Below are positions 12,886-45,839 of a stretch of DNA of 45,839 nt, piece after piece (positions within the stretch are counted from its first letter, which is position 1; each line of letters starts with the position of its first letter). A program made the translations under genes and the position numbers. Source of the stretch: Macrostomum lignano (taxonomy: Eukaryota); NCBI GenBank assembly GCA_002269645.1, contig NIVC01004441.1, positions 1-45,839 of the forward strand, in the 5' to 3' direction. The notes under the pieces are model-generated. The model saw only the letters and a program-made list of their open reading frames with translations, was not told the DNA's origin and did not search any database.

Positions 12886-13847
12886 CTGGAGAAGATTCGG
12901 ATTGCGTGTGAGTTATGAGAAGACAAACCTTTACTGGAAATTAAATGTGCGCATGAATGAATTTTGGGAAATAGGGGATTTCTGTGGAGATGAGGATTAT
13001 AGCGACTTCTGCCCCCCTTCAGTTGACCTTGTTTACTCTCTCGTGCGATTCAGTCTAGCCTTCTCTCTCTCACCCTCTGTTCACTCTGATTGGTCCTCAC
13101 CTCGTCCCTCTTTAGCCTCTCGTTCTCACCCACCCCTCCTTTTATTATCTGCATTCAATCCCCCTATGTTAATGTCCAGTTGTGAGTCCGAAGCTATAAC
13201 CTCTGGGCTACAACACAAGCTTGCAGCTTGTAATTAAAGAAGACTCATTTTGAGAAGACGTCAGTTGTAAGCTTAGAATCAAAAGAAATCTCGAAGGATG
13301 GAAGAAAAGATAGAAAAGGTAAAATCTGGGTCACGCACCTTCCGCTGTCTCCAAAGAGCGAGTCCACTGGCGGCATTGAGAGAGCAGGAAATCAGGATAT
13401 CTCTTCAGCTTTCTTCAGCAAAATGTTGTCACCCGAGTTTCGCCAAGCCATGCGCTCAATTTATACGAACCTCGGGCACCGTGCAATCCGACACGTGAGA
13501 CGGTCGCGAACTTGCAGCCGCAGTGCGACCCCTGAGAGTTAGTCAGCTAATTTGTTCATGCACGGCTGAAGCCAGCGATGACTCATCCGCGGTTTTTTGG
13601 TGGGCTTCGCTGACTCGAGGGCATCCGCGCGTAGGCTCGGTTCGACAGAGTCGCTACAACTGCGAACTGCACGCAGAGGTATCGAGTTTCACTTAAGCGG
13701 CCCAGCGAAATTTTTAGAATGACTTTTTGCAGATTTGTTCTGCAAATACTATGCTAGAAAAACTGCCGTGACGTGCACCATCAAGTATCTCTTCACTGAA
13801 AATTTACTGATAAGGAAACCTGGGACAAGTGTGAGATGTACAGAAAC

Positions 13848-16236
13848 ACTGCATGCACACTGATGCACTGCATGCACACACTGATGCACTGTATGCACAC
13901 ACTGAGACACTGCATGCACACACTGATGCACTGCATGCACACACTGAGACACTGCATGCACACACTGAGACACTGCATGCACACACTGATACACTGCATG
14001 CACACACTGAGACACTGCATGCACACACTGATGCACTGCATGCACACACTGATGCACTGCATGCACACACTGATACACTGCATGCACACACTGATGCACT
14101 GCATGCACACACTGATGCACTGCATGCACACACTGAGACACTGCATGCACACACTGAGACACTGCATGCACACACTGATACACTGCATGCACACACTGAG
14201 ACACTGCATGCACACACTGATGCACTGCATGCACACACCGATACACTGCATGCACACACTGATGCACTGCATGCACACACTGATACACTGCATGCACACA
14301 CTGAGACACTGCATGCACACACTGATGCACTGCATGCACACACTGATGCACTGCATGCACACACTGATGCACTGCATGCACACACTGATGCACTGCATGC
14401 ACACACTGATACACTGCATGCACACACACTGATGCACTGCATGCACACACTGATGCACTGCATGCACACACTGATGCACTGCATGCACACACTGATACAC
14501 TGCATGCACACACCGATACACTGCATGCACACACTGATGCACTGCATGCACACACTGATACACTGCATGCACACACACTGATGCACTGCATGCACACACT
14601 GATGCACTGCATGCACACACTGATGCACTGCATGCACACACTGATGCACTGCATGCACACACTGATGCACTGCATGCACACACTGATGCACTGCATGCAC
14701 ACACTGATGCACTGCATGCACACACTGATGCACTGCATGCACACACTGATGCACTGCATGCACACACTGATACACTGCATGCACACACTGATGCACTGCA
14801 TGCACACACTGATGCACTGCATGCACACACTGATGCACTGCATGCACACACTGATGCACTGCATGCACACACTGATGCACTGCATGCACACACTGATACA
14901 CTGCATGCACACACACTGATGCACTGTATGCACACACTGATGCACTGCATGCACACACTGATGCACTGCATGCACACACTGATGCACTGCATGCACACAC
15001 TGATGCACTGCATGCACACACTGATGCACTGCATGCACACACTGATGCACTGCATGCACACACTGATGCACTGCATGCACACACTGATGCACTGCATGCA
15101 CACACCGATACACTGCATGCACACACTGATGCACTGCATGCACACACTGATACACTGCATGCACACACTGAGACACTGCATGCACACACTGATGCACTGC
15201 ATGCACACACTGATGCACTGCATGCACACACTGATGCACTGCATGCACACACTGATGCACTGCATGCACACACTGATACACTGCATGCACACACACTGAT
15301 GCACTGCATGCACACACTGATGCACTGCATGCACACACTGATGCACTGCATGCACACACTGATACACTGCATGCACACACCGATACACTGCATGCACACA
15401 CTGATGCACTGCATGCACACACTGATACACTGCATGCACACACACTGATGCACTGCATGCACACACTGATGCACTGCATGCACACACTGATGCACTGCAT
15501 GCACACACTGATGCACTGCATGCACACACTGATGCACTGCATGCACACACTGATGCACTGCATGCACACACTGATGCACTGCATGCACACACTGATGCAC
15601 TGCATGCACACACTGATGCACTGCATGCACACACTGATGCACTGCATGCACACACTGATACACTGCATGCACACACTGATACACTGCATGCACACACTGA
15701 TGCACTGTATGCACACACTGATGCACTGCATGCACACACTGATGCACTGTATGCACACACTGATGCACTGCATGCACACACTGATGCACTGCATGCACAC
15801 ACTGATGCACTGCATGCACACACTGATGCACTGCATGCACACACTGATGCACTGCATGCACACACTGATGCACTGCATGCACACACTGATGCACTGCATG
15901 CACACACTGATGCATTGCATGCACACACTGATGCACTGCATGCACACACTGAGACACTGCATGCACACACTGAGACACTGCATGCACACACTGAGACACT
16001 GCATGCACACACTGAGACACTGCATGCACACACTGAGACACTGCATGCACACACTGAGACACTGCATGCACACACTGAGACACTGCATGCACACACTGAG
16101 ACACTGCATGCACACACTGAGACACTGCATGCACACACTGAGACACTGCATGCACACACTGAGACACTGCATGCACACACTGAGACACTGCATGCACACA
16201 CTGAGACACTGCATGCACACACTGAGACACTGCATG
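13848..16236. repeat. 21-bp minisatellite (TGCACTGCATGCACACACTGA), about 110 copies
   Basis: Clear periodicity with GAT/GAG/GATA variants and occasional 23-bp units; long ORFs here are artefacts. Confidence 0.98.
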
Positions 16237-16489
16237 CTTAGATAATTCAGAGTCTTGTTGGTTGCAACTAAAAGACTTACTGCTGAAATTCCAAACCGGA
16301 TTTGCTAAAATTGTATCGATTGAGGCTGCCAGAGACTCGATATTCGCGTATCCAAACGGCTGTTCGATAAAAACCGCACACCGCCTCCAGCGAGTCATTG
16401 GTGTTGCAAATCATTGAATTCTCTCACCAACACTGTTTCATACAGCAATATGATCTGGCACATTTTGCTCCTAGAAGTATTGCAATTAT

Positions 16490-18199: not shown

Positions 18200-21100
18200 T
18201 CAGAACACCACGATGGTGACCAGCCAGGTCAGGAAGATGATCAGCATGCCGGCCAGGTAGACTCCGAAGAGCAGCCGCAGCAGCCGGAACTTGGCCGTCT
18301 CGATGCTGTCCTTCTCCTCCGAACTGTCGGCATCCTGCGCCTCTGCGGAAGCGGAGGGGGGCGCGGGTTTTGCGAGGCGGGTTCGAGGACCATCTTCTGG
18401 ACTTCCAGTGATGCACATAAAGTTCGTGCGCGATAGATTTGAGTCTTGAGATTTTTGAGAAGATGTTTCATTAGACCGGTCAATTATGACAAAGGAAGGT
18501 TCTTCGGAAGTCGTTTTATATTTAAAAAGGAAGTTTTTGCAGATTGGATTGCATAAGAAGTCTAGATTAAAACTTATATAATGTCTTTTGTATAAAAGAA
18601 TTCTGTACGAGAGACAGGAAGAACCGATGTGTTGCTTCAATTTACCTCGTTTGCCCACGAGCTCCCAATCTCGGCAACCCACGAGCTCCCAATCTCGGCA
18701 ACCCACAAGCTCCCAATCTCGGCAACCTACGAGCTCTCAATCTCGGTAACCCACGAGCTCCCAATCTCGGCAAACCACGAGCTCCCAATCTCGGCAACCC
18801 ACGAGCTCCCAATCTCGGCAACCCACGAGCTCCCAATCTCGGCAACCCACGAGCTCCCAATCTCGGCAACCCACGAGCTCTCAATCTCGGTAACCCACGA
18901 GCTCTCAATCTCGGCAACCCACGAGCTCCCAATCTCGGCAACCCACGAGCTCCCAATCTCGGCAACCCACGAGCTCCCAATCTCGGCAACCCACGAGCTC
19001 CCAATCTCGGCAACCCACAAGCTCCCAATCTCGGCAACCCACGAGCTCCCAATCTCGGCAACCCACGAGCTCCCAATCTCGGCAACCCACGAGCTCCCAA
19101 TCTCGGCAACCCACGAGCTCCCAATCTCGGCAACCCACGAGCTCCCAATCTCGGCAACCCACGAGCTCCCAATCTCGGCAACCCACGAGCTCCCAATCTC
19201 GGCAACCCACGAGCTCCCAATCTCGGCAACCCATGAGCTCCCAATCTCGGCAACCCACGAGCTCCCAATCTCGGCAACCCACGAGCTCCCAATCTCGGCA
19301 ACCCACGAGCTCCCAATCTCGGCAACCCACGAGCTCCCAATCTTGACAACCCGGCAACCCACAATCCCCCCCCCGAGTCTTCCCAACCCGGATGTGCAGC
19401 AAGAGTCTCACTGCTTCCAAAGCGAGCCAGCACGATGGGCACTACAATCTGGAACACCAGGTGGAAGCCCAGCCAGGTGAAGGCGTACACCAGATGAGAA
19501 ATCCGATAGGACTGCGGCAGCGACGACAGGAACCCGATGGTGATGATGGTGGTGTCTGGAATTTGAACAAATTTCGAAGCGATGTGTGAGACAGTTGTAT
19601 AACTAAATTGGGCCACGAATTTGCTTGAGTACTACTACTCTTAGGAACAGTTGTTAAGTAGTGCAAACTTGGCAAAATGATTAATCTTCTGGCAACTATA
19701 AAAAAACACGGAAAAGTAAAGCCAATAGTATGGCACTGTGCTGCTGAACATAACAATACCTGCACTCCTGTTACCCACCTGCCAGCGACAGGGCGGTGTA
19801 GGCTACGATCTGGTGGGCGATTTTGAACCAAGGCCGCTTGGGCGAGTCTTTGTCCGGCCGCAGCGCGCCCATGAGGATCTGCACCACCGTCAGGCACACG
19901 ATGGTCAGTCCCATAGCGCCGTGGCTCTGAGTGTTGCTGTACATCTGGGAATTAAAAAAGCACAAAGAACTCAGACATTGTTGCTTGCTTTTTGGACCCC
20001 CAGAGAAGTGAAACTCACGGAGCGCCACTTCCAGTCGAACTCGGCAAATATGAGCAGCACGCCAATCAGGGAGGCGCAGAAGCCCGTCACCATGAAGCCT
20101 CGGTGAAGCTGCAGATTTTAAATGATTTTATTAACGAGCTGCTTTGCCACCCTCACCCCTCAGTCCCTACCCCTCATCTCCTGCCCCTCTTCCCCTACCC
20201 CTCATCTCCTGCCCCTCTTCCCCTACCCCTCATCGCCTGCCCCTCTTCCCCTACCCCTCATCGCCTGCCCCTCTTGCCCTGCCCCTCTTCCTCTGCCCCT
20301 CATCTCCTGCCCCTCCTGCCCCTCTTGCCCTGCCCCTCATTTCCTGCCCCTCATCTCCTGCCCCTCATCTCCTGCCCCTCATCTCCTGCCCCTCATCCCT
20401 TGCCCCTCTTGCCCTGCCCCTCATCTCCTGCCCCTCATCTCCTGCCCCTCATCTCCTACCCCTCATCTCCTGCCCCTCTTCCCCTACCCCTCATCGCCTG
20501 CCCCTCTTGCCCTGCCCCTCTTCCTCTGCCCCTCATTTCCTGCCCCTCTTGCCCTGCCCCTCATCTCCTGCCCCCCATCTCCTGCCCCTCATCTCCTGCC
20601 CCTCATCTCCTGCCCCTCATCTCCTGCCCCTCATCTCCTGCCCCTCATCTCCTGCCCCTCATCTCCTGCCCCTCATCTCCTGCCCCTCGTCTCCTACCCC
20701 TCATCTCCTGCCCCTCTTGCCCTGCCCCTCTTTCCCTGCCTCACTTCCCCTGCCACTCATCCCCTTGCCACCCACATGGAACCAAAGCTGCACGTTGCCG
20801 TAGGTCTTCATGAAGAGGCAGCGGTAGAACAGCGCCAAATTGGCACCCAGAGGCATCAGGAACTGCCAGGCCGTCAGCATGAGGCTGCCGTGAGCTCGCC
20901 GCAGGCCGCTAATGCGATGCGCCGAGTAGCCATCGCGAGACTGCAGGTTAACCTGGCTGGTGGAGATCGCCGGCATCTCCGTGTGCTGCTGGACGCTGTT
21001 GCTGTCTGAATGCAATGTCAAAGCCGGGGCGATGAATCATTTGGAGAAATGATGCAGTACAGTACAGATAGATGTGGGTTTCAGATGCGACTGTGGCTGT

Positions 21101-24100
21101 GGTCAGGTGCGGCTGTGGTCAGGTGTGGCTGTGGTCAGGTGTGGCTGTGGTCAGGTGTGGCTGTGTTCAGGTGTGGCTATGATCAGGTGTGGCTGTGGTC
21201 AGGTGTGGCTGTGATCAGGTGTGGCTGTGGTCAGGTGTGGCTATGGTCAGGTGTGGCTGTGGTCAGGTGTGGCTGTGGTCAGGTGTGGCTGTGGTCAGGT
21301 GTGGCTGTGGTCAGGTGTGGCTGTGTTCAGGTGTGGCTGTGGTCAGGTGTGGCTGTGATCAAGTGTGGCTGTGGTCAGGTGTGGCTGTGGTCAGGTGTGG
21401 CTGTGGTCAGGTGTGGCTGTGTTCAGGTGTGGCTGTGGTCAGGTGTGGCTGTGATCAAGTGTGGCTGTGGTCAGGTGTGGCTGTGGTCAGGTGTGGCTAT
21501 GGTCAGGTGTGGCTGTGGTCAGGTGTGGCTGTGGTCAGGTGTGGCTGTGGTCAGGTGTGGCTGTGGTCAGGTGTGGCTGTGGTCAGGTGTGGCTGTGGTC
21601 AGGTGTGGCTGTGTTCAGGTGTGGCTGTGGTCAGGTGTGGCTGTGGTCAGGTGTGGCTGTGGTCAGGTGTGGCTGTGGTCAGGTGTGGCTGTGGTCAGGT
21701 GTGGCTGTGGTCAGGTGTGGCTGTGGTCAGGTGTGGCTGTGGTCAGGTGTGGCTGTGGTCAGGTGTGGCTGTGGTCAGGTGTGGCTGTGGTCAGGTGTGG
21801 CTGTGGTCAGGTGTGGCTGTGGTCAGGTGTGGCTGTGGTCAGGTGTGGCTGTGGTCAGGTGTGGCTGTGGTCAGGTGTGGCTGTGGTCAGGTGTGGCTGT
21901 GGTCAGGTGTGGCTGTGGTCAGGTGTGGCTGTGGTCAGGTGTGGCTGTGGTCAGGTGTGGCTGTGGTCAGGTGTGGCTGTGGTCAGGTGTGGCTGTGGTC
22001 AGGTGTGGCTGTGGTCAGGTGTGGCTGTGGTCAGGTGTGGCTGTGGTCAGGTGTGGCTGTGGTCAGGTGTGGCTGTGGTCAGGTGTGGCTGTGGTCAGGT
22101 GTGGCTGTGTTCAGGTGTGGCTGTGGTCAAGTGTGGGATTGTGGTCAGGTGTGGCTGTGGTCAGGTGTGGCTGTGGTCAGGTGTGGCTGTGGTCAGGTGT
22201 GGCTGTGGTCAGGTGTGGCTGTGGTCAGGTGTGGCTGTGGTCAGGTGTGGCTATGGTCAGGTGTGGCTGTGGTCAGGTGTGGCTGTGGTCAGGTGTGGCT
22301 GTGTTCAGGTGTGGCTGTGATCAGGTGTGGCTGTGTTCAGGTGTGGCTGTGGTCAGGTGTGGCTGTGGTCAGGTGTGGCTGTGGTCAGGTGTGGCTGTGT
22401 TCAGGTGTGGCTGTGGTCAAGTGTGGGATTGTGGTCAGGTGTGGCTGTGGTCAGGTGTGGCTGTGGTCAGGTGTGGCTGTGGTCAGGTGTGGCTGTGGTC
22501 AGGTGTGGCTGTGGTCAGGTGTGGCTATGGTCAGGTGTGGCTGTGGTCAGGTGTGGCTGTGGTCAGGTGTGGCTGTGTTCAGGTGTGGCTGTGATCAGGT
22601 GTGGCTGTGTTCAGGTGTGGCTGTGGTCAGGTGTGGGATTGTGGTCAGGTGTGGCTATGGTCAGGTGTGGCTGTGGTCAGGTGTGGCTGTGGTCAGGTGT
22701 GGCTGTGGTCAGGTGTGGCTGTGTTCATGTGTGGCTGTGGTCAGGTGTGGCTGTGGTCAGGTGTGGCTGTGGTCAGGTGTGGCTGTGGTCAGGTGTGGCT
22801 GTGGTCAGATGTGGCTGTGTTCAGGTGTGGCTGTGGTCAGGTGTGGCTGTGATCAAGTGTGGCTGTGGTCAGGTGTGGCTGTGATCAAGTGTGGCTGTGG
22901 TCAGGTGTGGCTGTGGTCAGGTGTGGCTGTGGTCAAGTGTGTCTGTGGTCAGGTGTGGCTGTGATCAAGTGTGGCTGTGGTCAGGTGCGGCTGTGGTCAG
23001 GTGTGGCTGTGGTCAGGTGTGGCTGTGGTCATGCAATTTACCAGGACATTAGACAATATGGCGCACCTCTGTAGGTATTTCCGTAAGCTACGAAGACATA
23101 TCTCGGAGTTCGCAGATCAAAGCTGCGAAGCACAGGAGGCTCCGAACTCTGCCTGGGATTCAGATAGGTGCTGATGTTCACTGTCCAGGGCAGCGTGAAG
23201 TCGCACCGGATGCGTCCGGTGTCCAGCAGCTCGATGTACTTATTCTGCATCGGCGTCTGTTGGCGGGAGGGGGCACAAAATGCAAAAGAAAGTCTCAGGT
23301 AGAGCCGGCTGGCGGGGTGCTCACCCAGCGGTGTCTCTCGTTGAGCCGGCGGTACTTGGGGTTGTAGCCCAGCTGCATGCTGTAGCCGCCCTGACCGCCT
23401 GTGCAGGTCAGGGTCAGGTCGTCTCCCTGCGCAAGGAGTTGCGGGTTCGGGAATATAGTTAGCCTAGATTCAGATTTAGAAGGCTTCTGGACAGGTTGAC
23501 TGGGCCCTAGGAAACTGGGGTCATATTAGCCAGGGTCAATTTATTTTGGGTCATGGTAGCCTGGGTCATGGAAGCCTGGGTCATGGTAACCTGGGTCATG
23601 GAAGCCTGGGTCATGGTAACCTGGGTCATGGAAGCCTGGGTCATGGAAGCCTGGGTCATGGTAACCTGGGTCATGGAAGCCTGGATCATGGTAGCCTGGG
23701 TCATGGAAGCCTGGGTCATAGTAGCCTTCATTATAGTCTGGGTCATGGCTGCCTTGGTCATGGAAGCCTGGGACATGGAAGGCTGGGTCATGGAAGCCTG
23801 GGTCATGGAAGCCTTAGTCATGGTAGCCTGGGTCATGGAAGCCTGGGTCATGGAAGCCTGGGTCATGGAAGCCTGGGTCATGGAAGCCTGGGTCATGGAA
23901 GCCTGGGTCATAAAAGCCTGCATGGGTCAGAAAAGCCTCACCATCTTGTCATCGTCCGACAGCCCCAAAGACACGAAGTTCCCCACCGCATGCACCAACA
24001 GCCGCAGGCGGTTCTCGGCCTCCAGGTAGAGGAACTTCACCAGAATCTCGCAGTTCGCGGTATCGCACAGGGCCGGAGACCGCACGCAGCCGAATTCGGT

Positions 24101-26316
24101 GCCGCAGGCACCTTCTAGGGGGTTGGGCGACTCTCCAATCGTCAGTGGCGGGAAGGGCGGGTCTTCGCTTGACTGGACGGCGGTCAGCACACTGGAGGTG
24201 ACGTTGGACCAGAAGGTGCTGAAGGACTGCACCACCGGCGTTCTGCGTTTGATAGGTTTTTCGGTTTAGACCATTAGTTTTTTTATTCATGTTACAGTAA
24301 ACTGGCACAGATTACAGTAAACTAGCACAGATTACAGTAAACTAGCACAGATTACAGTAAACTAGCACAGACTAAAGTAAACTAGCACAGATTACAGTAA
24401 ACTAGCACAGATTACAGTAAACTAGCACAGATTACAGTAAACTAGCACAGATTACAGTAAACTAGCACAGACTAAAGTAAACTAGCACAGATTACAGTAA
24501 ACTAGCACAGATTACAGTAAACTAGCACAGATTACAGTAAACTAGCACAGATTACAGTAAACTAGCACAGATTACAGTAAACTAGCACAGATTACAGTCA
24601 AATAGCACAGATTACAGTAAACTAGCACAGATTACAGAAAACTAGCACAGATTACAGTAAACTAGCACAGATTACAGTAAACTAGCACAGATTACAGTAA
24701 ACTAGCACAGACTAAAGTAAACTAGCACAGATTACAGTAAACTGGCACATATTACAGAAAACTAGCACAGATTACAGTAAACTAGCACAGATTACAGTAA
24801 ACTAGCACAGATTACAGTAAACTAGCACAGATTACAGTAAACTGGCACAGATTACAGTAAACTGGCACAGATTACAGTAAACTAGCACAGATTACAGTAA
24901 ACTAGCACAGATTACAGTAAACTAGCACAGATTACAGTAAACTAGCACAGATTACAGTCAAATAGCACAGATTACAGTAAACTGGCACAGATTACAGTAA
25001 ACTAGCACAGATTACAGTAAACTAGCACAGATTACAGTAAACTAGCACAGATTACAGTAAACTGGCACAGATTACAGTAAACTGGCACAGATTACAGTAA
25101 ACTAGCACAGATTACAGTAAACTAGCACAGATTACAGTAAACTAGCACAGATTACAGTAAACTAGCACAGATTACAGTAAACTGGCACAGATTACAGTAA
25201 ACTGGCACAGATTACAGTAAACTAGCACAGATTACAGTAAACTAGCACAGATTACAGTAAACTAGCACAGATTACAGTAAACTAGCACAGATTACAGTCA
25301 AATAGCACAGATTACAGTAAACTGGCACAGATTACAGTAAACTAGCACAGATTACAGTAAACTAGCACAGATTACAGTCAACTAGCACAGATTACAGTAA
25401 ACTGGCACAGATTACAGTAAACTGGCACAGATTACAGTAAACTGGCACAGATTACAGTAAACTGGCACAGACATCTGTACCATGAATCAGCCAAGGACAC
25501 TTACGTGAACACCACGTCTCCCACGGAGCGAGGTGGCGCGGTCCAGCGAGCCGTGATCTCGGACTGCGGAACTCCGCCGTGGGTGAGGCAGTTCTGCGGG
25601 GTCGGGACGTAGGGGGCTTCGGCTTAAAAATGTTTGTCACCAAGTCGGCCAGTCGATCAACTCAATCGGGAACTCACCGGCAGGCTGGCGTTCTGGCTGT
25701 ACCAAAAGCCGCCGACGGCGCCGGTGGGCACCTCGAAGCCGCCGACCAGCTCTTCCGTGTCGTCGCTGACTCGGCGAGCCGCCAGCGCGAAGCCAAGAAA
25801 CGACTGACCGCTCGTGCCGCGGAGAGTCACTGGTTGCAGTTTTGAATGGCAGTTTATTACACCTGTTAATTTCCCATCGCAGCCCAGGTGAGTCCTACGT
25901 GTATCTCATCCAGGTGGCTGAGATCTCACCCACGTGACTCCTATCTCACCCACGTGACTCCTATCTCACCCAGGTGACTCCTATCTCACCCAGTTAACTC
26001 CTAAATGTATCTCACCCAGGTGACTCCTATCTCACCCAGGTGACTCTTATCCCACCTAGGTGCCTTTTATCTCACACCTGGGTAGCTGCTCACCTTGAAC
26101 AGTCTGGCCGGGCGAGTAGCGGTCTGGGCTGAAGGTCAACTCGTAGGGCGGAGCTGAGGTCTGCGGCTGGAAGCCGTGCATCGGCACCAGGTTGCTGCAC
26201 CTGTGGTTCGGCGCGCCGTCAGGAAATGCAGCCGACAGGTGAACGCCTGACAGCAGGATTACGGCGCTGAGTAGCATCTGCACTTCCGGGCTCATCGGCA
26301 GTCGCGAGTTCGACAT
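18200..26316 (-). CDS. FRRS1: Ferric-chelate reductase 1 / SDR2-like (Reeler + DOMON + cytochrome b561), 11 exons
   Basis: Exons 26094-26316, 25678-25829, 25505-25593, 23942-24242, 23325-23426, 23067-23256, 20776-21005, 20019-20108, 19779-19944, 19412-19555 and 18200-18396; all GT-AG and phase-consistent. Reeler FPDGAP..C..LVPMHG...WTAPP; DOMON VSLGLSDDDKMGDD; b561 AHGSLMLTAW, WFH/LHR, HGAMG and KIAHQIVAY. Confidence 0.92.
18655..19345. repeat. 24-bp minisatellite (CCCACGAGCTCCCAATCTCGGCAA), about 29 copies, FRRS1 intron 10
   Basis: Near-perfect periodicity. Confidence 0.97.
20150..20760. repeat. C-rich 15-bp-based repeat (CTCATCTCCTGCCCC), FRRS1 intron 7
   Basis: Degenerate pyrimidine-rich periodicity; G-rich on the gene sense strand. 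Confidence 0.93.
21085..23030. repeat. 16-bp minisatellite (GGTCAGGTGTGGCTGT), about 120 copies, FRRS1 intron 6
   Basis: Near-perfect periodicity. Confidence 0.98.
23515..23915. repeat. 15-bp minisatellite (TGGGTCATGGAAGCC), FRRS1 intron 4
   Basis: Periodicity; MTQAS and LGHGS pseudo-ORFs. Confidence 0.95.
24293..25470. repeat. 20-bp minisatellite (ACTAGCACAGATTACAGTAA), about 58 copies, FRRS1 intron 3
   Basis: Near-perfect periodicity in register with the 60-nt lines. Confidence 0.98.
25885..26050. repeat. 20-bp short tandem repeat (CTCACCCASGTGACTCCTAT), FRRS1 intron 1
   Basis: About 7 partly degenerate copies. Confidence 0.85.
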
Positions 26317-26949
26317 TCTTGACAAAAAATGATTGACCTCAAATTACAAAACTTATAATGCACTGCGTAAGCGTTCAAAATGCTGCACTTTCCCGCTTCG
26401 TGGCGGCATTGGATGGGATGGGAAAGCCACGCCCTGTAGCCTCAGGCTTCGCCCTGTGGCCGCTGTCTGACAGCAGTACGCAGGGGCTGACGGAAGGGGG
26501 AGAAAATCTCTCCCCATGGGAAAGAGTTGAACAGATGGAATTTAGGAGACGCTGAGAAGGCACTGCCCTTTTCCAATCCTGCTCTGAGCTCGGCAATTCA
26601 TGTAGAGGCATGCGACTGCAAGTGAGATGTACGAGTGTACATGTAATTATATGCACATGTAGCCCAAAGTAGAAGGCGGAGGATGAACCAGAAGATATCC
26701 TCTCACACTCTGTGCTTCATTACCTTTGCTTGCACAAGAGAAATATGACAAATGTAAGGAAGGAGGGTCGAAAGCCAAGGCGATTCTCTGGGTTTTGACT
26801 CATTTGAGTGACATTCCTGGGCTTGGAGGGCGATTCTCTGAAGTATGAGGGCGATAAAATATTGTTAGATGCTGATTCCATTGATATAGAGACCTATTCT
26901 CAACAGTTAAAGGCATTTACTTGATTTACTGAGAAGGCGTACGGCGATT

Positions 26950-28230
26950 CTTTTTGGTTGGATGCCGATTCTCTGAGGTTGGGAGGCGATTCTCTGAGGT
27001 TGGGAGGCGATTCTCTGAGGTTGGGAGGTGATTCTCTGAGGTTGGGAGGCGATTCTCTGAGGTTGGGAGGCGATTCCCTCTGGCTGGGAGGCGATTCCCT
27101 CTGGCTGGGAGGCGATTCCCTCTGGCTGGGAGGCGATTCCCTGAGGTTGGGAGGCGATTCCCTCTGGCTGGGAGGCGATTCCCGGAGCTGGGAGGCGATT
27201 CCCTGAGGTTGGGAGGCGATTCCCTGAGGTTAGGAGACGATTTTCTGAGGTTAGGAGGCGATTCCCTATGGCTGGGAGGCGATTTCCTGAGGTTAGGAGG
27301 CGATTCCCTATGGCTGGGAGGCGATTCCCTGAGGTTGGGAGGCGATTCCCTGAGGTTGGGAGGCGAATTCCGAGGTTGGGAGGCGAATTCCCTGAGGTTG
27401 GGAGGCGAATTCCCTGAGGTTGGGAGGCGATTCCCTCTGGCTGGAAGGCGATTCCCGGAGCTGGGAGGCGATTCTCTGAGGTTGGGAGGCGATTCCCTGA
27501 GGTTGGGAGGCGAATTCCGAGGTTGGGAGGCGAATTCCCTGAGGTTGGGAGGCGAATTCCCTGAGGTTGGGAGGCGATTCCCTCTGGCTGGAAGGCGATT
27601 CCCGGAGCTGGGAGGCGATTCTCTGAGGTTGGGAGGCGATTCCCTGAGGTTGGGAGGCGAATTCCCTGAGGTTGGGAGGCGATTCCCTCTGGCTGGAAGG
27701 CGATTCCCGGAGCTGGGAGGCGATTCTCTGAGGTTGGGAGGCGATTCCCTGAGGTTGGGAGGCGAATTCCGAGGTTGGGAGGCGAATTCCCTGAGGTTGG
27801 GAGGCGAATTCCCTGAGGTTAGGAGGCGATTCCCTATGGCTGGGAGGCGATTCTCTGAGGTTGGGAGGCGATTCCCTGAGGTTGGGAGGCGAATTCCGAG
27901 GTTGGGAGGCGAATTCCCTGAGGTTGGGAGGCGAATTCCCTGAGGTTGGGAGGCGATTCCCTCTGGCTGGAAGGCGATTCCCGGAGCTGGGAGGCGATTC
28001 TCTGAGGTTGGGAGGCGATTCCCTGAGGTTGGGAGGCGAATTCCCTGAGGTTGGGAGGCGAATTCCCTGAGGTTGGGAGGCGATTCCCGTAGCTGGGAGG
28101 CGATTCCCGGAGTTGTGAGGCGATTCCCTGAGGTTGGAAGGTGATTCTCTGAGGTTGGGAGGCGATTCCCTGAGGTTGGAAGGTGATTCTCTGAGGTTGG
28201 GAGGCGATTCCCTGAGGTTGGGAGGTGAGC
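26950..28230. repeat. 21/22-bp complex minisatellite (GAGGTTGGGAGGCGATTCCCT)
   Basis: Periodic, with variant units forming higher-order blocks; lies upstream of FRRS1. Confidence 0.96.
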
Positions 28231-40970: not shown

Positions 40971-43900
40971 AATACAACAACAACAACAAAATACGCTGTC
41001 AAGATGGCAAAAGTCAGCGTCACAGGGCGCGCTTCATGGCTTGGGCGCGAACAAAGGCCGCGCCACCGGCAGTGTCCGGGGCGCCGGCGTCAGCCAGCAG
41101 ACAGTCGACATAACGCCGAGTTCGCGCTTGACCTCGCCGGTAGGGTGCCTGCAGCGTGAGCAGCAGCACCTCCTGCACCGGCTGTGGGCAGTACGACTCG
41201 GCGCGGATGAGATGGCCTGCGAGCTGGAGTCGCCGACGGCGCAGTAGATCACTTGGACGTGGCAGGCCAGCGCGGCGATAGAGTGCCGCGTTGGTGACTC
41301 ACTCGACGCCGATGTTGAAGGCGGCGCGCAGCAGGCCAGCGTGCGCCGCATCGACTTGCTGTTTGAGTGAGTCCGTCAGCGTCCAGGTCTCGGCGTTGTA
41401 CAGCAGGACGGTCTCGATTACCGCCTGGAACAGCGCCGCCCTCTGGCGGTCCGGTAGGGCCTCGAACTGCAGGACTGCCCTCACAGAACGAAAGGCAGCC
41501 CAGGCAAGCCCGCGGCGGCGTCGCAGGTCCTCGCGAGCGTCTGGAACCAGACCGCCGAGGTAGACGAACTGCTGACATCGCGGGAGTTCGGTCGCCTGCC
41601 CGTCAGCGCCTCGGCAGAATATTGCAGCCTCGGCACGCAGAGCACAACGGTCTTCTGTGTGTTGACCACCAGGCCGACACTCGCCGCAACGGCAGCTAGC
41701 CTGTCCAGCTGCCGTTGGGCGCCCTCGACGGTCGAGGACAGCAGGGCGAGGTCGTCGGCGTAGCCAAGCACGCTGAGCCGCTTCTCCGGTTGACGTCGAC
41801 CTACGCGTCGCCGCAGCAGAAAACCGTCGTCGTCGGTAGGAAGAGCAGTCCGCAGCACCCAGTCAAGCACCAGGACGAACAGGAACGGCGCCAGCGTATC
41901 TCCCTGAAGTACTCCGGAGGATGTCTCAAAGGAGTCCGATAGGCCGTCCGGTGTTGTCACAGCAGCTGTCGTATCACGGTACATCGCCATGATGGCGGAG
42001 ATCAGCTGCTCGGCACGTTGTACGCGCGGAGCACCATTGGAAGCACGGCTCTGACAACCGAGTCGAATGCCTTCTTGAAATCAATAAAGATTAGAATCAG
42101 GATCGACTGGCGAATCCGCGCCTCCTCGATGACTCGGCGAAGAGCCAGGATCTGCGCCACTGTGCCGCGATGGGGCCGGAACCCGTTCTGCTCTGGGCGC
42201 AGGTACGGATCCAGCACGGGCTGCAACCGCGAAAGCAGCATCCGGTTGAACAGCTTCGCTGCACAGGACTGAAGGCAGATGTGCCCGTGGTGCCCGGCCT
42301 AGTGGTGCCCGGCTTCTTTGGAACAGCAACGATGTGCGCCGTGGTCCATTCGTTGGGCGCCGCCTCACCGAAGAGCACGCGGTTCATCACTCTGGCGACC
42401 TCAGCGGCCACACAGAGGATGCGCAGCGCCTCGATGGGCACCTCGTCCGGACCCAGCGCTTTCCCGCCCGGTGACTGCTGGGCGAGCTTGACAACGTCGG
42501 CTGCGTTGACTGGGCCTACGCTGAAACTCTCCTCTGCCGGCAACGGCGTCTCCGGCGGCAGCGTCAGACTGTCTGGCAGCGGGGGTGGCGGCGCGTTGAC
42601 GATGGCGGCGAAGAACTCGCGCAGCTCGTTCCTGCGCTCATCCGGAGTGTCACCAGCCAGGTTCAGCGGATTGCGCCGCTTTCGCCCCGTCAGAGCGTTG
42701 ATGGCGGACCAGGCCACGCGCCCTCTGGCATCGGGCCCAGCGGCAGAGACAGCCTGAATGGCGTCATCGACAGCCGCTTGTTGGCGCTGCAGGTAGACAG
42801 CCGCCAGAGCTGCCTCTGCCTCGCGGGTTGGTCACCTGCTCAAGCGGAGCCTCTCCAGATCTTCCCTCGCTGCCTGAATCGCAGGGTCGTCCTGCCAGAC
42901 CGGCTGCCCACGTTGAGCCGGCTGCATCATCGGGACTGCTTGCTCCGAGGCGGTTCTGACTGCAGCGCACACTTCCGCATACTCGGCACTTCCACGCTTG
43001 TCGCCCAGCGCGGTGTTAAAGGCGCTAGCAAAGCAACGCTGCGTATCGGTGGCTCTGAGCGCGCGGTAGTAGCGCCGCGGTGGCCGCTTCGGCGGACGGT
43101 AGAGCGGATCGCGAAGGTTGAGGTCGCAGATGAGGAGCCGGTGATCGGACCGCAGAGCCAGCGGCTTGATGGTGCGGCAGTTAACGGCGCGACGACGCTC
43201 ACGGAAACGCACGAGCACGTGGTCGAGCTGTGCTTGTCTCCGGGTTGCGTTCCTGCCACGCGCGTTCCGTCGCCTCCGCTTGCAGCCCACGAAGGTTGCG
43301 AGACCGCTCAGTGGCTTGCGGAAGCGGGTGTTGGCCACACCATGTCCTGCCTCTCCAGGAAGTCCTCCAGTGCCTCGGTGTTGTTGTTCCCGCGTGGCGT
43401 CACGAACAGCGACCTCTCGGACCTACGCAGGACTGCGTTCAGGTCTCCGAGGACGACCGCTGTGTCACGCTGCGCCATCGCCTCTACCTGCACTGAGAGC
43501 TGCTCGAAAAACTCTTGAGCCTCGTCAGGGCGTGTGGCAGGGCGCGCGTACGCGCAGAACAGGCGAGCATTCCGACTGCGTAGCCGGACGTCGATCCGAA
43601 GCAACCGGGGGACAGGGAGACGCAGCGACAGCTCTGCTGCAGCCTCGGCCCGATCAGCGCTCCAACTCCTCCACTGCCTCGCTGGTCCGCAGAAGTATAG
43701 TAGAGGGTCCACCGGGCGCCCAAGTCCTCACAATGAAGTCCCGGGTCGGCCTTGATAGACACCTCCTGCAGCGAGATGATGTCGCCAGCACCCCTCTACG
43801 CCAAGCAGCCTTGAGAGTGCGGCAGTTCAGCGTCCCGACCCGAAGCATGCCCTGTGGTACAGCTTGGGCTCGATGCAGTTGTGCCTCACGGTCCCCGGCG

Positions 43901-44118
43901 CCACCCGGAGGATCCGAGTGGACCCGCGCGGCAGCTCGACGGGCGGCGCCACGCAGCCGGCCTCATCGGTTCCGCTCACGCCGGCGCTCAACACGGCGAC
44001 GGGCGCTCCGCTGCCCTCGCTTGGTCCTGCCGCATTTGGCCGCCGCAGCAGTTAAGCGCGGCTCTCCGCTCTGACCACGAGGAGGTAGCGGCATTTATCT
44101 GCACCGTGGTGCAAAGGC
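40971..44118 (-). mobile_element. Near full-length RTE-like non-LTR retrotransposon (APE endonuclease + reverse transcriptase), frameshifted
   Basis: APE motifs VGTLNCRTL, DIISLQE, VLGDLNA, LDHVLV and SDH. RT motifs EQNGFRPHRGT, FIDFKKAFDS, GVLQGDTLAPFLF and YADD. C-terminus LLYNAETWTLT. (TTG)n tail at about 40975-40990. A single ORF of about 3.1 kb fits the RTE clade. Confidence 0.92.
44028..44118 (-). ncRNA. HDV-like self-cleaving ribozyme at the 5' end of the RTE element
   Basis: P1a GCCTTTG; J1/2 hairpin; P2a TGCCGC; P3 ACC/GGT around L3 TCCTCGT; P1b CAGAGC; P1.1 GG; P4 GCCGC..GCGGC; J4/2 GGCCAAA; P2b GCGGCA. P1 has a 1-nt imperfection. Confidence 0.75.
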
Positions 44119-45839
44119 AACAAAATGAAAATGACGACACGAGTTTTTAAAGTTTTTGAAGCGTTGTTAGTATACGAGCTCGTATGTGCGGCCTTACTTT
44201 TTGTATTGAATAAGTTTGAAATATTTTTTTCGTGTTGAGAAATAAATTAAGGCTCGCTTTCTGGTTAGCGGTAGTGCTAGTGGTTACTGTTGCAGTGCCT
44301 TTCCATAGCAGCAGGGCCTTTAGCACCAAGGGCTTAGCACCAGATGGGCTCCAGCTAAAGCACGATGCAGCATATCTTTCCCCCACCTAGCTCTTTGGAT
44401 TTGCACTTGTTGCCTTTGAGTTACGGCGTTGTTGTACGTGAGGCTGTTTACTAATGGAGTAAATCTAGCAAAAAGCCACTTCTCAGCTTCCCTTCGTGAA
44501 TTCGAAAACAATTAGTGATCTGGCTCGCCAAAGTGCATAGAAAATTAATGCATGCAGCTACTCTCTCTGCATTTGCGTGAATGGCAGCTAACCGCTATTA
44601 CAGTGTATAGTCATGCAGTCCGGTTTCAATGTTAATCATCCTGCATATTTGCTACATGTGGACAGCAGGCAGAATACACAATATACGGAAACTCGCGGAC
44701 AAGCCATCATCGCCCTGGCTGGAAATTTGGTGATTTTGCGCAGATGCTTCGCATCATTTCCATATATAGTTGTGGGCTTGGATTTCAACACAGCCAGCGC
44801 TGGCCGAGCGAGCTGCAGCTGTCCCACACCGCTCAAATTCTAACCGCCAACAAAATGTGCGATGCGGGATTGCTTTTTTAGGCCTCGCAGTATTTGAGCT
44901 CTCGGTCGGAAAATATGGTGGCACATCTGGCGGCCGGCACATCTGCTTCTGTATTAGATGAAATTTGACTGCTTTAAGCTGCGCTTGAGCAAACAGAAAT
45001 TCACAACAGTAGAAGTCAACGCTAAGTGCAGTGTCTGGCTTCAGGAAGCCGAAACTGTTATTGATTTCGTCCTGCGAAATCGGACCTGCTCAATAGAAAA
45101 GCAGTGATGGCGGGATTGGCTGAAGAAGAACCTATATTGTCTGGTGGCTTTTTAATAAATAATAATACTTAACGCTTTACTTAACCACAGAGCGCCTTGG
45201 CTACTACCGCAAGTCAACTAGGCGACAGTCAACCTGCAGCCAGCCAGACGACAATTTTGCTGTTATACGTCAGTTCCACTGACTCCGGAGCACGCGTGTC
45301 CACGACCGTCTCATCATTAGGTACTGAGGTACACTGTGCGAGTACCTCCTGCACACACAGGGCCCTGGGGGTAGGCCCTTATTGGCATCCATGCAGAGAG
45401 AGGTCACTGGTGCGAGAGACGGACGGACGAGTTACCGCTGAGCAGTCCTGCCGGGCAGTTGGGTTACTCTGACCGATAAGGAACAACCAACTGAAAGGCT
45501 GATCAGTTTTAAGCATCGGAAACACCCAAGTACTAAGTTAGTGCAAGCAATGCGAAAGTGCTTCCCATGCCAGTGTGGGGTTGGCCTTCATCAATAATGC
45601 ACGCCCTGCGGCAGGACAAACCGCCAAGTCGGGCCGCCCCCCAGCCGCTGAAGGCCCAGCGATCTGTGCACAGCTTTGTGTTGAACAGCTGGAATTCATT
45701 GCGCAAAATGGGGATCCCGGGCGGAGGATCAGCCTTAGGGCAGCGGGTCCCAGATGTTGTTTGCCATTTATCTATTGCCAGTTTGGCATCCCAAGAGGAC
45801 TGACGGAGGCCAGAGGCTTTAGGAACTCGTGGGGGGGAC

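Follow-up and report, generated by a model that had tools for sequence, protein, structure and literature searches.

The minus strand near one end of a Macrostomum lignano contig (NIVC01004441.1, assembly GCA_002269645.1) raises the question of whether an RTE-type retrotransposon in this flatworm begins with a self-cleaving ribozyme of the hepatitis delta virus (HDV) type. The whole contig stretch that was analyzed, 45,839 nt in length, is referred to here as the window, and the sequence in question lies around positions 44028-44126. HDV-like ribozymes process the 5' ends of R2, R4, L1 and RTE elements and may promote translation. Their association with RTE elements, on which a preliminary description of this DNA had relied, is already published, and the planarian R2 ribozyme has been described as well; in the literature searched, we found no link between HDV-like ribozymes and Macrostomum. 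From comparison with related elements, we conclude that the locus carries a real HDV-like ribozyme motif, a covarying double pseudoknot at the first bases of an RTE family. The window sequence itself is likely to be a fossil copy of this family-specific self-cleaving ribozyme, which would occupy the first ~100 nt of a retrotransposon of ~3.15 kb.

A double pseudoknot shared by related elements

The preliminary description had quoted the minus strand from 44118 to 44028, which matches the contig letter for letter. When the sequence was re-read, all segments of an HDV-like double pseudoknot were found at the positions that had been assigned to them. The 5' strand of P1 is treated separately below; the other parts, all on the minus strand, are as follows.

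44095-44120, minus: peripheral hairpin in J1/2, P1.2-like, with the core UUUGCAC-CACG-GUGCAGA at 44115-44098
44092-44094, minus: ATG of the element's single open reading frame (ORF), overlapping the 5' edge of P2
44088-44093, minus: 5' strand of P2, UGCCGC (TGCCGC in DNA), pairing with GCGGCA at 44033-44028
44074-44086, minus: P3 (ACC/GGU) enclosing L3 (UCCUCGU), equal to the drz-agam-1 consensus
44082 and 44081, minus: L3 residues C44082 and C44081, the partners in P1.1
44068-44073, minus: 3' strand of P1 (P1'), CAGAGC, which is also two codons, Gln-Ser
44066-44067, minus: GG of P1.1, partner of the L3 CC
44042-44062, minus: P4 hairpin, GCCGCGC, loop UUAACU, GC-U-GCGGC, all 7 pairs invariant in the family
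44034-44041, minus: J4/2, GGCCAAAU (GGCCAAAT in the quoted DNA), with the putative catalytic C44039 followed by a conserved AA
44028-44033, minus: 3' strand of P2, GCGGCA, from the re-read sequence and family pair counts

At Rfam gathering thresholds, the whole window gave no match. In Rfam E-value mode, applied to 43900-44300 (401 nt), drz-agam-1 (RF01787) was the one family that matched; its model aligned over its full length to 44103-44030 on the minus strand with 28.8 bits (E=7e-4). This alignment shows full identity to the consensus across the P3/L3 motif ACCUCCUCGUGGU and a GGA after P1', and it places the consensus catalytic C on position 44039. The score lies below the gathering threshold of 37 bits for RF01787, and because of this the motif is classed as HDV-like only and not as a member of that Rfam family. 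Taken alone, the match places the motif moderately above chance.

Twelve contigs with homologous proteins were examined, and five elements whose 5' end is homologous were obtained: L001 and L004 (ENA metagenome), L002 (ENA), L003 (JGI) and L134 (Logan SRA run). Their reverse transcriptases (RT) are 60-71% identical to that of the window copy. The other seven look-ups led to copies truncated at the 5' end or to sister elements whose 5' untranslated region (UTR) is unrelated (L005-L007, L128-L133). The 5' ends of the family follow a common order, which starts with a 6-nt strand beginning with G, 1-3 nt, a long hairpin with an AT-rich base, and (A)UG-CCGC. It continues with R-CC, UCC, a hairpin insert, A-GGY, 6 nt, GG and 3 nt, and ends with GCCGCGC-loop-GC-N-GCGGC, KGC(C)AA.. 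and GYGGYR. The spacer between P1 and the J1/2 helix is 0-3 nt across the family. The J1/2 segments of all six sequences (the five relatives and the window) fold in RNAfold as a hairpin that joins P1 to P2. In the window RNA this hairpin is present in both the minimum free energy (MFE) and the centroid fold, and its base could be extended by UUG/UAA. P4 is a 7-bp hairpin with one bulge in all sequences and likewise appears in the MFE fold of the window RNA.

A covariance model was trained on the five relatives alone, excluding the window sequence, with P1, P3 and P4 entered as pairs. It found a single match in the 45.8 kb window, full length at 44126-44025 on the minus strand, with 66.6 bits (E=1.5e-14). 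Together with the covariation within the family, this supports the earlier proposal of an HDV-like ribozyme at the 5' end of an RTE-like element.

The six sequences (window, L001, L002, L003, L134 and L004) were aligned on the pseudoknotted structure. Standard pairs fill 98.6% of the cells of this alignment, against 28-56% when the partners are slid. Changes on both sides are seen in five of the six P1 pairs and in one of the three P3 pairs, the latter being a switch from A-U to G-C in three of the six sequences. P2 crosses P1, as the topology of HDV-like ribozymes requires, and has 97% standard pairs; its three variable pairs show one-sided changes to G·U or U·G and no double change. Covariation among other copies, proposed in the preliminary description as a check of the helices, was thus obtained for P1 and P3, whereas P2 contributes wobbles only and P4 is invariant. 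The CC and GG of P1.1 are invariant in 6/6 sequences and hence offer no variation with which to test their pairing. In J4/2, the G, C, A and A are invariant columns, so that C44039, earlier named as the equivalent of the catalytic C, is both aligned to the drz-agam-1 consensus C and unchanged throughout the family.

HDV-like ribozymes have a P1 of 6-7 bp with the cleavage site at its first 5' nucleotide, and the family has a covarying P1 of 6 bp with G first. The P1/P1' pairs in relatives include GAGCCA/TGGCTC, GTTCCT/AGGGAC and GTGTTG/CAACAC (GUGUUG in RNA). Each P1' finds its perfect 6/6 partner only in the upstream sequence of its own element, at -32 to -38 from P2 and always with G first; cross-combinations between elements reach 5/6 at most. 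The joint chance of such pairing in three independent elements is ~6e-7.

A scan of metagenomes with a P4/J4/2/P2' pattern, which was too loose, returned among the matches listed only random GC-rich bacterial sequence, and upstream P2/P3/L3 were absent from the metagenome matches listed, save for one chance case (L025). A stricter pattern matched four times by chance among bacterial and archaeal genomes and had no match in viral contigs, and no related loci were found in the viral contigs searched.

A putative ribozyme core inside the coding sequence

An uninterrupted ORF runs from the ribozyme ATG through the whole endonuclease (EN) and RT protein in L002 (1060 aa), L003 (1059 aa) and L134 (1054 aa), and in these three elements the TG of the ATG forms the first two bases of P2. 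The window peptide MPLPPRGQSGEPRLTAAAAKCG... lies in the same frame, from the ATG at 44094. The ribozyme core encodes the conserved peptide MP.PPG...GEPR..AAAAK.G...ERNR, and the first ~22-35 ORF codons are taken up by the catalytic core. When the N-terminal peptide was used in a profile search, the single match was at locus L128, which has no ribozyme. The AUG at the P2 edge stands ~33 nt from the predicted processed 5' end. A start codon and ~22-35 codons within the fold would make this a compact natural system in which to study translation of an uncapped, structured RNA with a 5'-OH.

This overlap raises the question of whether the HDV-like appearance is a coincidence, produced by GC-rich sequence that is kept only for encoding the N-terminal peptide. 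P2, P4, P1.1 and J4/2 are indeed part of the coding sequence and vary little or not at all, and the invariance of P4, P1.1 and J4/2 can be explained by coding constraint. The MFE of the window RNA is also not below that of shuffled sequences (z=-0.97), in a nested-only fold that leaves pseudoknots out, in which P2/P1' pairing competes and which we judged uninformative for this RNA. The covariation of P1 and P3, however, is not explicable by coding constraint, because the P1 5' strand lies upstream of the ATG and is non-coding and the codons of P1' are not conserved, its dipeptide being QS, WL, RD, QH or LV in different elements. Against coincidence there also stand the pairing of P1 with two such codons in three independent elements, the compensatory change from A-U to G-C in P3, the match of an independent Rfam model of the HDV family, and the retention of the fold in L001 although its ATG is lost and its 5' frame is shifted. 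In addition, the inserts in L3 of the relatives differ in sequence and length and all fold as hairpins (z -2.3 to -5.1). We regard a coincidental likeness as largely refuted and very improbable.

The family also departs from known HDV-like ribozymes in L3. The 3-bp P3 with an L3 of ~7-8 nt starting with UCC is found in the window copy, whose L3 is a canonical 7 nt; the five relatives keep P3 and UCC and have an L3 of 28-42 nt, beyond the accepted size. A further protein, P0123 (113 aa, known as a peptide only), starts MPRPPG-DPAHQGQD-GEPR, which implies an L3 of ~22 nt. In a neighbour-joining tree the window copy is sister to L004 and nested among the insert-bearing elements, so its short L3 is probably derived. 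A second CCUCC-like motif in several L3 inserts was considered as an alternative P3/L3 and rejected, since it is inconsistent across the sequences. The literature searched makes no mention of L3 insertions in HDV-like ribozymes. It is quite possible, and we propose it tentatively, that the family represents an undescribed HDV-like variant with a translated P2-P2' core, an L3 that tolerates hairpins and a P1 strand that is sometimes tandemly repeated upstream. If so, such ribozymes would be missed by Rfam models and by the fixed-L3 descriptors of published searches. If the RNAs with L3 inserts cleave, the accepted size limit of L3 would be wrong and descriptors would be overlooking a ribozyme class. 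An AUG within the ribozyme together with an expandable L3 could constitute a new variant, if activity is shown.

The upstream repeats were seen in two relatives. In L003 (1-127, at least six copies, period 17) and L134 (1-30, two copies, period 16), the ribozyme is preceded by tandem repeats of the first 16-17 nt of the predicted processed RNA, which comprise P1 GUGUUG and the beginning of J1/2. Each repeat supplies a substrate strand for P1, and the arrays may have arisen by template switching at the RNA 5' end or may be an assembly effect.

By analogy with characterized HDV-like ribozymes, the following course of events is proposed. The element would probably be transcribed within a longer read-through RNA, and the nascent RNA would fold into P1 (6 bp), a structured J1/2 hairpin, P2, P3/L3, P1.1 and P4. 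The J1/2 helix would draw P1 and P2 together; a structured J1/2 domain, the P1.2 of drz-Agam-2-1, has been found to speed cleavage. The J4/2 cytosine (44039 in the window), with Mg2+, would then cut immediately before the first nucleotide of P1 (G in intact relatives), and, from established HDV-ribozyme chemistry, the element RNA would be left with a precise 5'-OH end. The ribozyme would be retained on this RNA with the AUG of the EN+RT ORF at the 5' edge of P2, and may aid translation of the uncapped RNA.

The same conserved fold might instead serve as a 5' pseudoknot that does not cleave and acts in translation initiation or RT binding, especially in relatives with a large L3 hairpin. The insert sits at the site of the canonical HDV active-site loop, the AUG is embedded in the fold, and IRES-like and protein-binding roles have been proposed in print for retrotransposon HDV-like ribozymes. 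The features that cleavage needs, however, are the ones that have been kept: an invariant J4/2 C with AA, the CC/GG of P1.1, and a G at +1 with a maintained P1. Roles in translation or binding are moreover compatible with cleavage, and we consider a purely non-cleaving pseudoknot improbable.

Two observations concern the reading frames in this region. A second frame over 43780-44090 on the minus strand, and over the same region of L001-L004, is open and conserved (for example RILRVAPGTVR.N.IEP.LY), which probably reflects strong nucleotide conservation around the hairpin rather than a second protein. P0122 (2114 aa) is a chimeric gene model in which a polyprotein resembling that of long terminal repeat (LTR) retroelements runs into an RTE ORF from SGEPRLTAAAAKCG, inside the ribozyme; this RTE start is 94% identical to the window peptide.

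P1 and the 5' boundary of the window copy

The window copy retains an unbroken, canonical core between P2 and P2', but its P1 has eroded to 5/6 weak pairs. Two candidates for its 5' strand were compared.

44121-44126, minus: AUUUUG, the homologous P1 5' strand placed by the relatives-only covariance model, at -33 from P2
44112-44118, minus: GCCUUUG, the P1 candidate of the preliminary description, overlapping the 5' strand of the J1/2 helix

AUUUUG pairs with CAGAGC at five of six positions, two of them G·U, and has A·C at the cleavage-site pair, which a single G-to-A change would explain; the duplex is worth -0.6 kcal/mol. GCCUUUG and CAGAGC form a duplex of 5 bp, or of 6 bp if a C is bulged, at -2.7 kcal/mol, which would reach -8.7 kcal/mol if a G were added. 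The P1 duplexes of intact relatives lie at -5.4 to -8.7 kcal/mol. Neither candidate pairs above chance, the best CAGAGC duplex within 55 nt upstream being equalled or beaten in 1388 of 2000 shuffles (69%).

Read literally, the preliminary description would make the locus a near-functional, full-length copy, with GCCUUUG (44118-44112) pairing to CAGAG(G)C as a 7-bp P1, one G of which had been lost by assembly error, and with cleavage 5' of G44118. The better duplex speaks for this arrangement, as does a G at +1, which all intact relatives have, and the 3' tail of the element is matched by the 8-9 nt that precede 44118 (ATTTTGTT(G)), which could be flank or a target-site duplication. A lost G is nevertheless unlikely, because every relative has a 6-bp P1 with a 6-nt P1' and because the window frame from the ATG at 44094 to ERNR is intact up to a stop at 43965; with the G added, the ATG and its MPLPP codons would no longer share a frame with GEPR..AAAAK.G. 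The cleavage site before G44118 fares no better, since the family model and architecture put P1 at 44126-44121, and GCCUUUG lies inside the conserved J1/2 helix and would leave no spacer. The ORF furthermore contains stops that arose by substitution, beyond what indel errors would produce. As a whole, this version is unlikely. For the position of P1 in itself, we somewhat favor the homologous site at 44126 and hold the site at 44118 to be a distinctly weaker candidate; the probability that remains falls to P1 having simply been lost in this copy. The ancestral cleavage site is predicted to lie 5' of 44126.

Several points weigh against the fossil-ribozyme reading that we prefer, and the first concerns this boundary. 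The 9-nt sequence ATTTTGTTG, found at 44126-44118, recurs where the element's own 3' tail begins (40981-40992, minus), and this makes the exact 5' end ambiguous. The upstream copy could be flank, a target-site duplication, a microhomology-mediated junction or the stub of an upstream element copy rather than P1; a search for target-site duplications found this same ambiguous 9-nt match and no other. Only five relatives are available, and L003 and L134 among them have an identical P1. Since P4 and P1.1 are constant, they give no covariation signal, and their conservation could be because of the coding sequence (GEPR..AAAA) in which they lie. The L3 of the relatives carries a hairpin of 21-35 nt beside the active site, and Rfam E-value mode applied to the relatives gave no HDV-family match, presumably because of these inserts. 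Finally, the assembly may contain indel errors.

Known systems and the host element

Among characterized ribozymes, the closest in form are drz-Agam-1 and drz-Agam-2 of Anopheles gambiae, which were reportedly described as HDV-like by Webb and colleagues in 2009 and Ruminski and colleagues in 2011. The likeness extends to the nested double pseudoknot, the consensus P3/L3 motif, GG(A) after P1' and C-N-A-A in J4/2, and the P1.2 of drz-Agam-2-1 resembles the structured J1/2 hairpin found here. The motif differs from drz-Agam-1 in its score relative to the 37-bit cut-off, in a P2 of 6 bp instead of 9 and in a P1 of 6 bp. The cleavage-site pair of HDV-like ribozymes is usually a wobble; in the present family it is instead G-C. 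The host lineage is flatworm-like, the ORF start codon lies within the ribozyme and the relatives bear an L3 hairpin insert, all of which sets the family apart from the drz-Agam ribozymes. With the ribozymes of R2, R4 and L1Tc it shares a place in the first ~100-200 nt of a non-LTR element and a proposed role in 5' processing of a co-transcript and translation of uncapped RNA. Those elements are from different clades and use different endonucleases or target sites, whereas the present one is of the RTE type, with an APE-type endonuclease and (TTG)n as its tail; R2 ribozymes, in addition, often have very long J1/2 loops and may cleave within 28S, in contrast to the cleavage predicted here at the element's own first base. 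Perere-3/SR3 of Schistosoma mansoni is likewise an RTE-clade element of Platyhelminthes with a 5' self-cleaving ribozyme, but its fold is a twister variant unrelated to the HDV-like fold and its cleavage-site strand is supplied differently. Flatworm RTE lineages thus appear to have recruited different ribozymes, a twister variant and an HDV-like one, for the same job. The present finding extends the known association to an RTE lineage of flatworm type and also to aquatic relatives that are uncultured, and in genome annotation the ribozyme model would mark the true 5' ends of this RTE family.

The element extends from 44126 to 40975 on the minus strand, ~3.15 kb, with one EN+RT ORF and a (TTG)n tail, in a block of 65% GC between flanks of ~30%. 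Its further features are listed here.

41020-44094, minus: remnant of the EN+RT ORF, from three-frame translation, Pfam and tblastn of the intact L002 ORF
40975-40989, minus: (TTG)5 microsatellite tail that closes the element on its 3' side; L001, L002, L004 and L134 likewise end in (TTG)n
43892-43912, minus: a second RNA hairpin inside the ORF, UCC-U-CCGG, loop GUGGCG, CCGG-GGA, with compensatory changes across nine elements

RTE elements are defined by a length of ~3.2 kb, a single EN+RT ORF and a microsatellite tail. The element fits this type by its size, its single ORF with an APE-type EN and an RT, and its short 3' UTR with a tandem repeat in place of poly(A). Pfam reported RVT_1 and a weak Exo_endo_phos on the pieces of the window ORF, and both domains occur in the relatives also. 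Among named proteins, reverse transcriptases of Macrostomum lignano come closest; across the C-terminal part of RT, two of these are near-identical to the window sequence, which points to this flatworm or a close relative as its probable source. The closest named relatives are annotated only as 'reverse transcriptase domain-containing protein'. No second copy of the element was found within the window by self-BLAST.

Relative to the intact L002 ORF, the window copy has at least six frame changes, near 43783, 43608, 43337, 42300, 42040 and 41650, and in-frame stops at 43965-43963, ~42834 and ~41301. A 15-nt tandem duplication in the RT region, GCCGGGCACCAC-TAG-GCCGGGCACCAC at ~42285-42315 on the minus strand, adds an in-frame TAG. 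The decay is real and not only a matter of assembly indels, because the stops are substitutions. The description of this copy as full length holds insofar as it reaches, or nearly reaches, the 5' end of the element; with its ORF dead and its P1 weak, the copy is most likely an inactive relic.

The ORF hairpin lies ~180 nt 3' of the ribozyme and has the consensus UCY-N-CYRG, loop GUGGCK, CYRG-RGA. Its compensatory changes run through CCGG/CCGG, CCAG/CUGG and CUAG/CUAG, and through UCC/GGA against UCU/AGA. It was located in L001 (~305-330), L002 (~434-460), L129 (~294-320), L132 (~389-415) and L133 (~303-330), and is thus common also to sister elements without a ribozyme. Four such sisters (L129, L130, L132 and L133), whose RT is 60-61% identical to that of the window copy, keep this hairpin and the EN start; their first 300-400 nt are unrelated and less GC-rich and gave no match to the ribozyme model. 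In the neighbour-joining tree the ribozyme-less sisters interleave with those that bear a ribozyme, a pattern that suggests an exchange of 5' modules. A further metagenome contig, L131, starts with a Nextera adapter (1-52, …TCGTCGGCAGCGTCAGATGTGTATAAGAGACAG), and because of this adapter its 5' part is regarded as an assembly artefact.

The remainder of the window is of a different character. Positions 1-33000 are a patchwork of minisatellite arrays, more than 15 in number and unrelated to one another, whose periods range from 4 to 56; they include 13847-16237 (21 nt x 113), 21092-23031 (16 nt x 121), 24292-25471 (20 nt x 59) and 26943-28225 (21 nt x 61). These arrays account for the strong local swings in GC skew and for the long spurious ORFs of the window.

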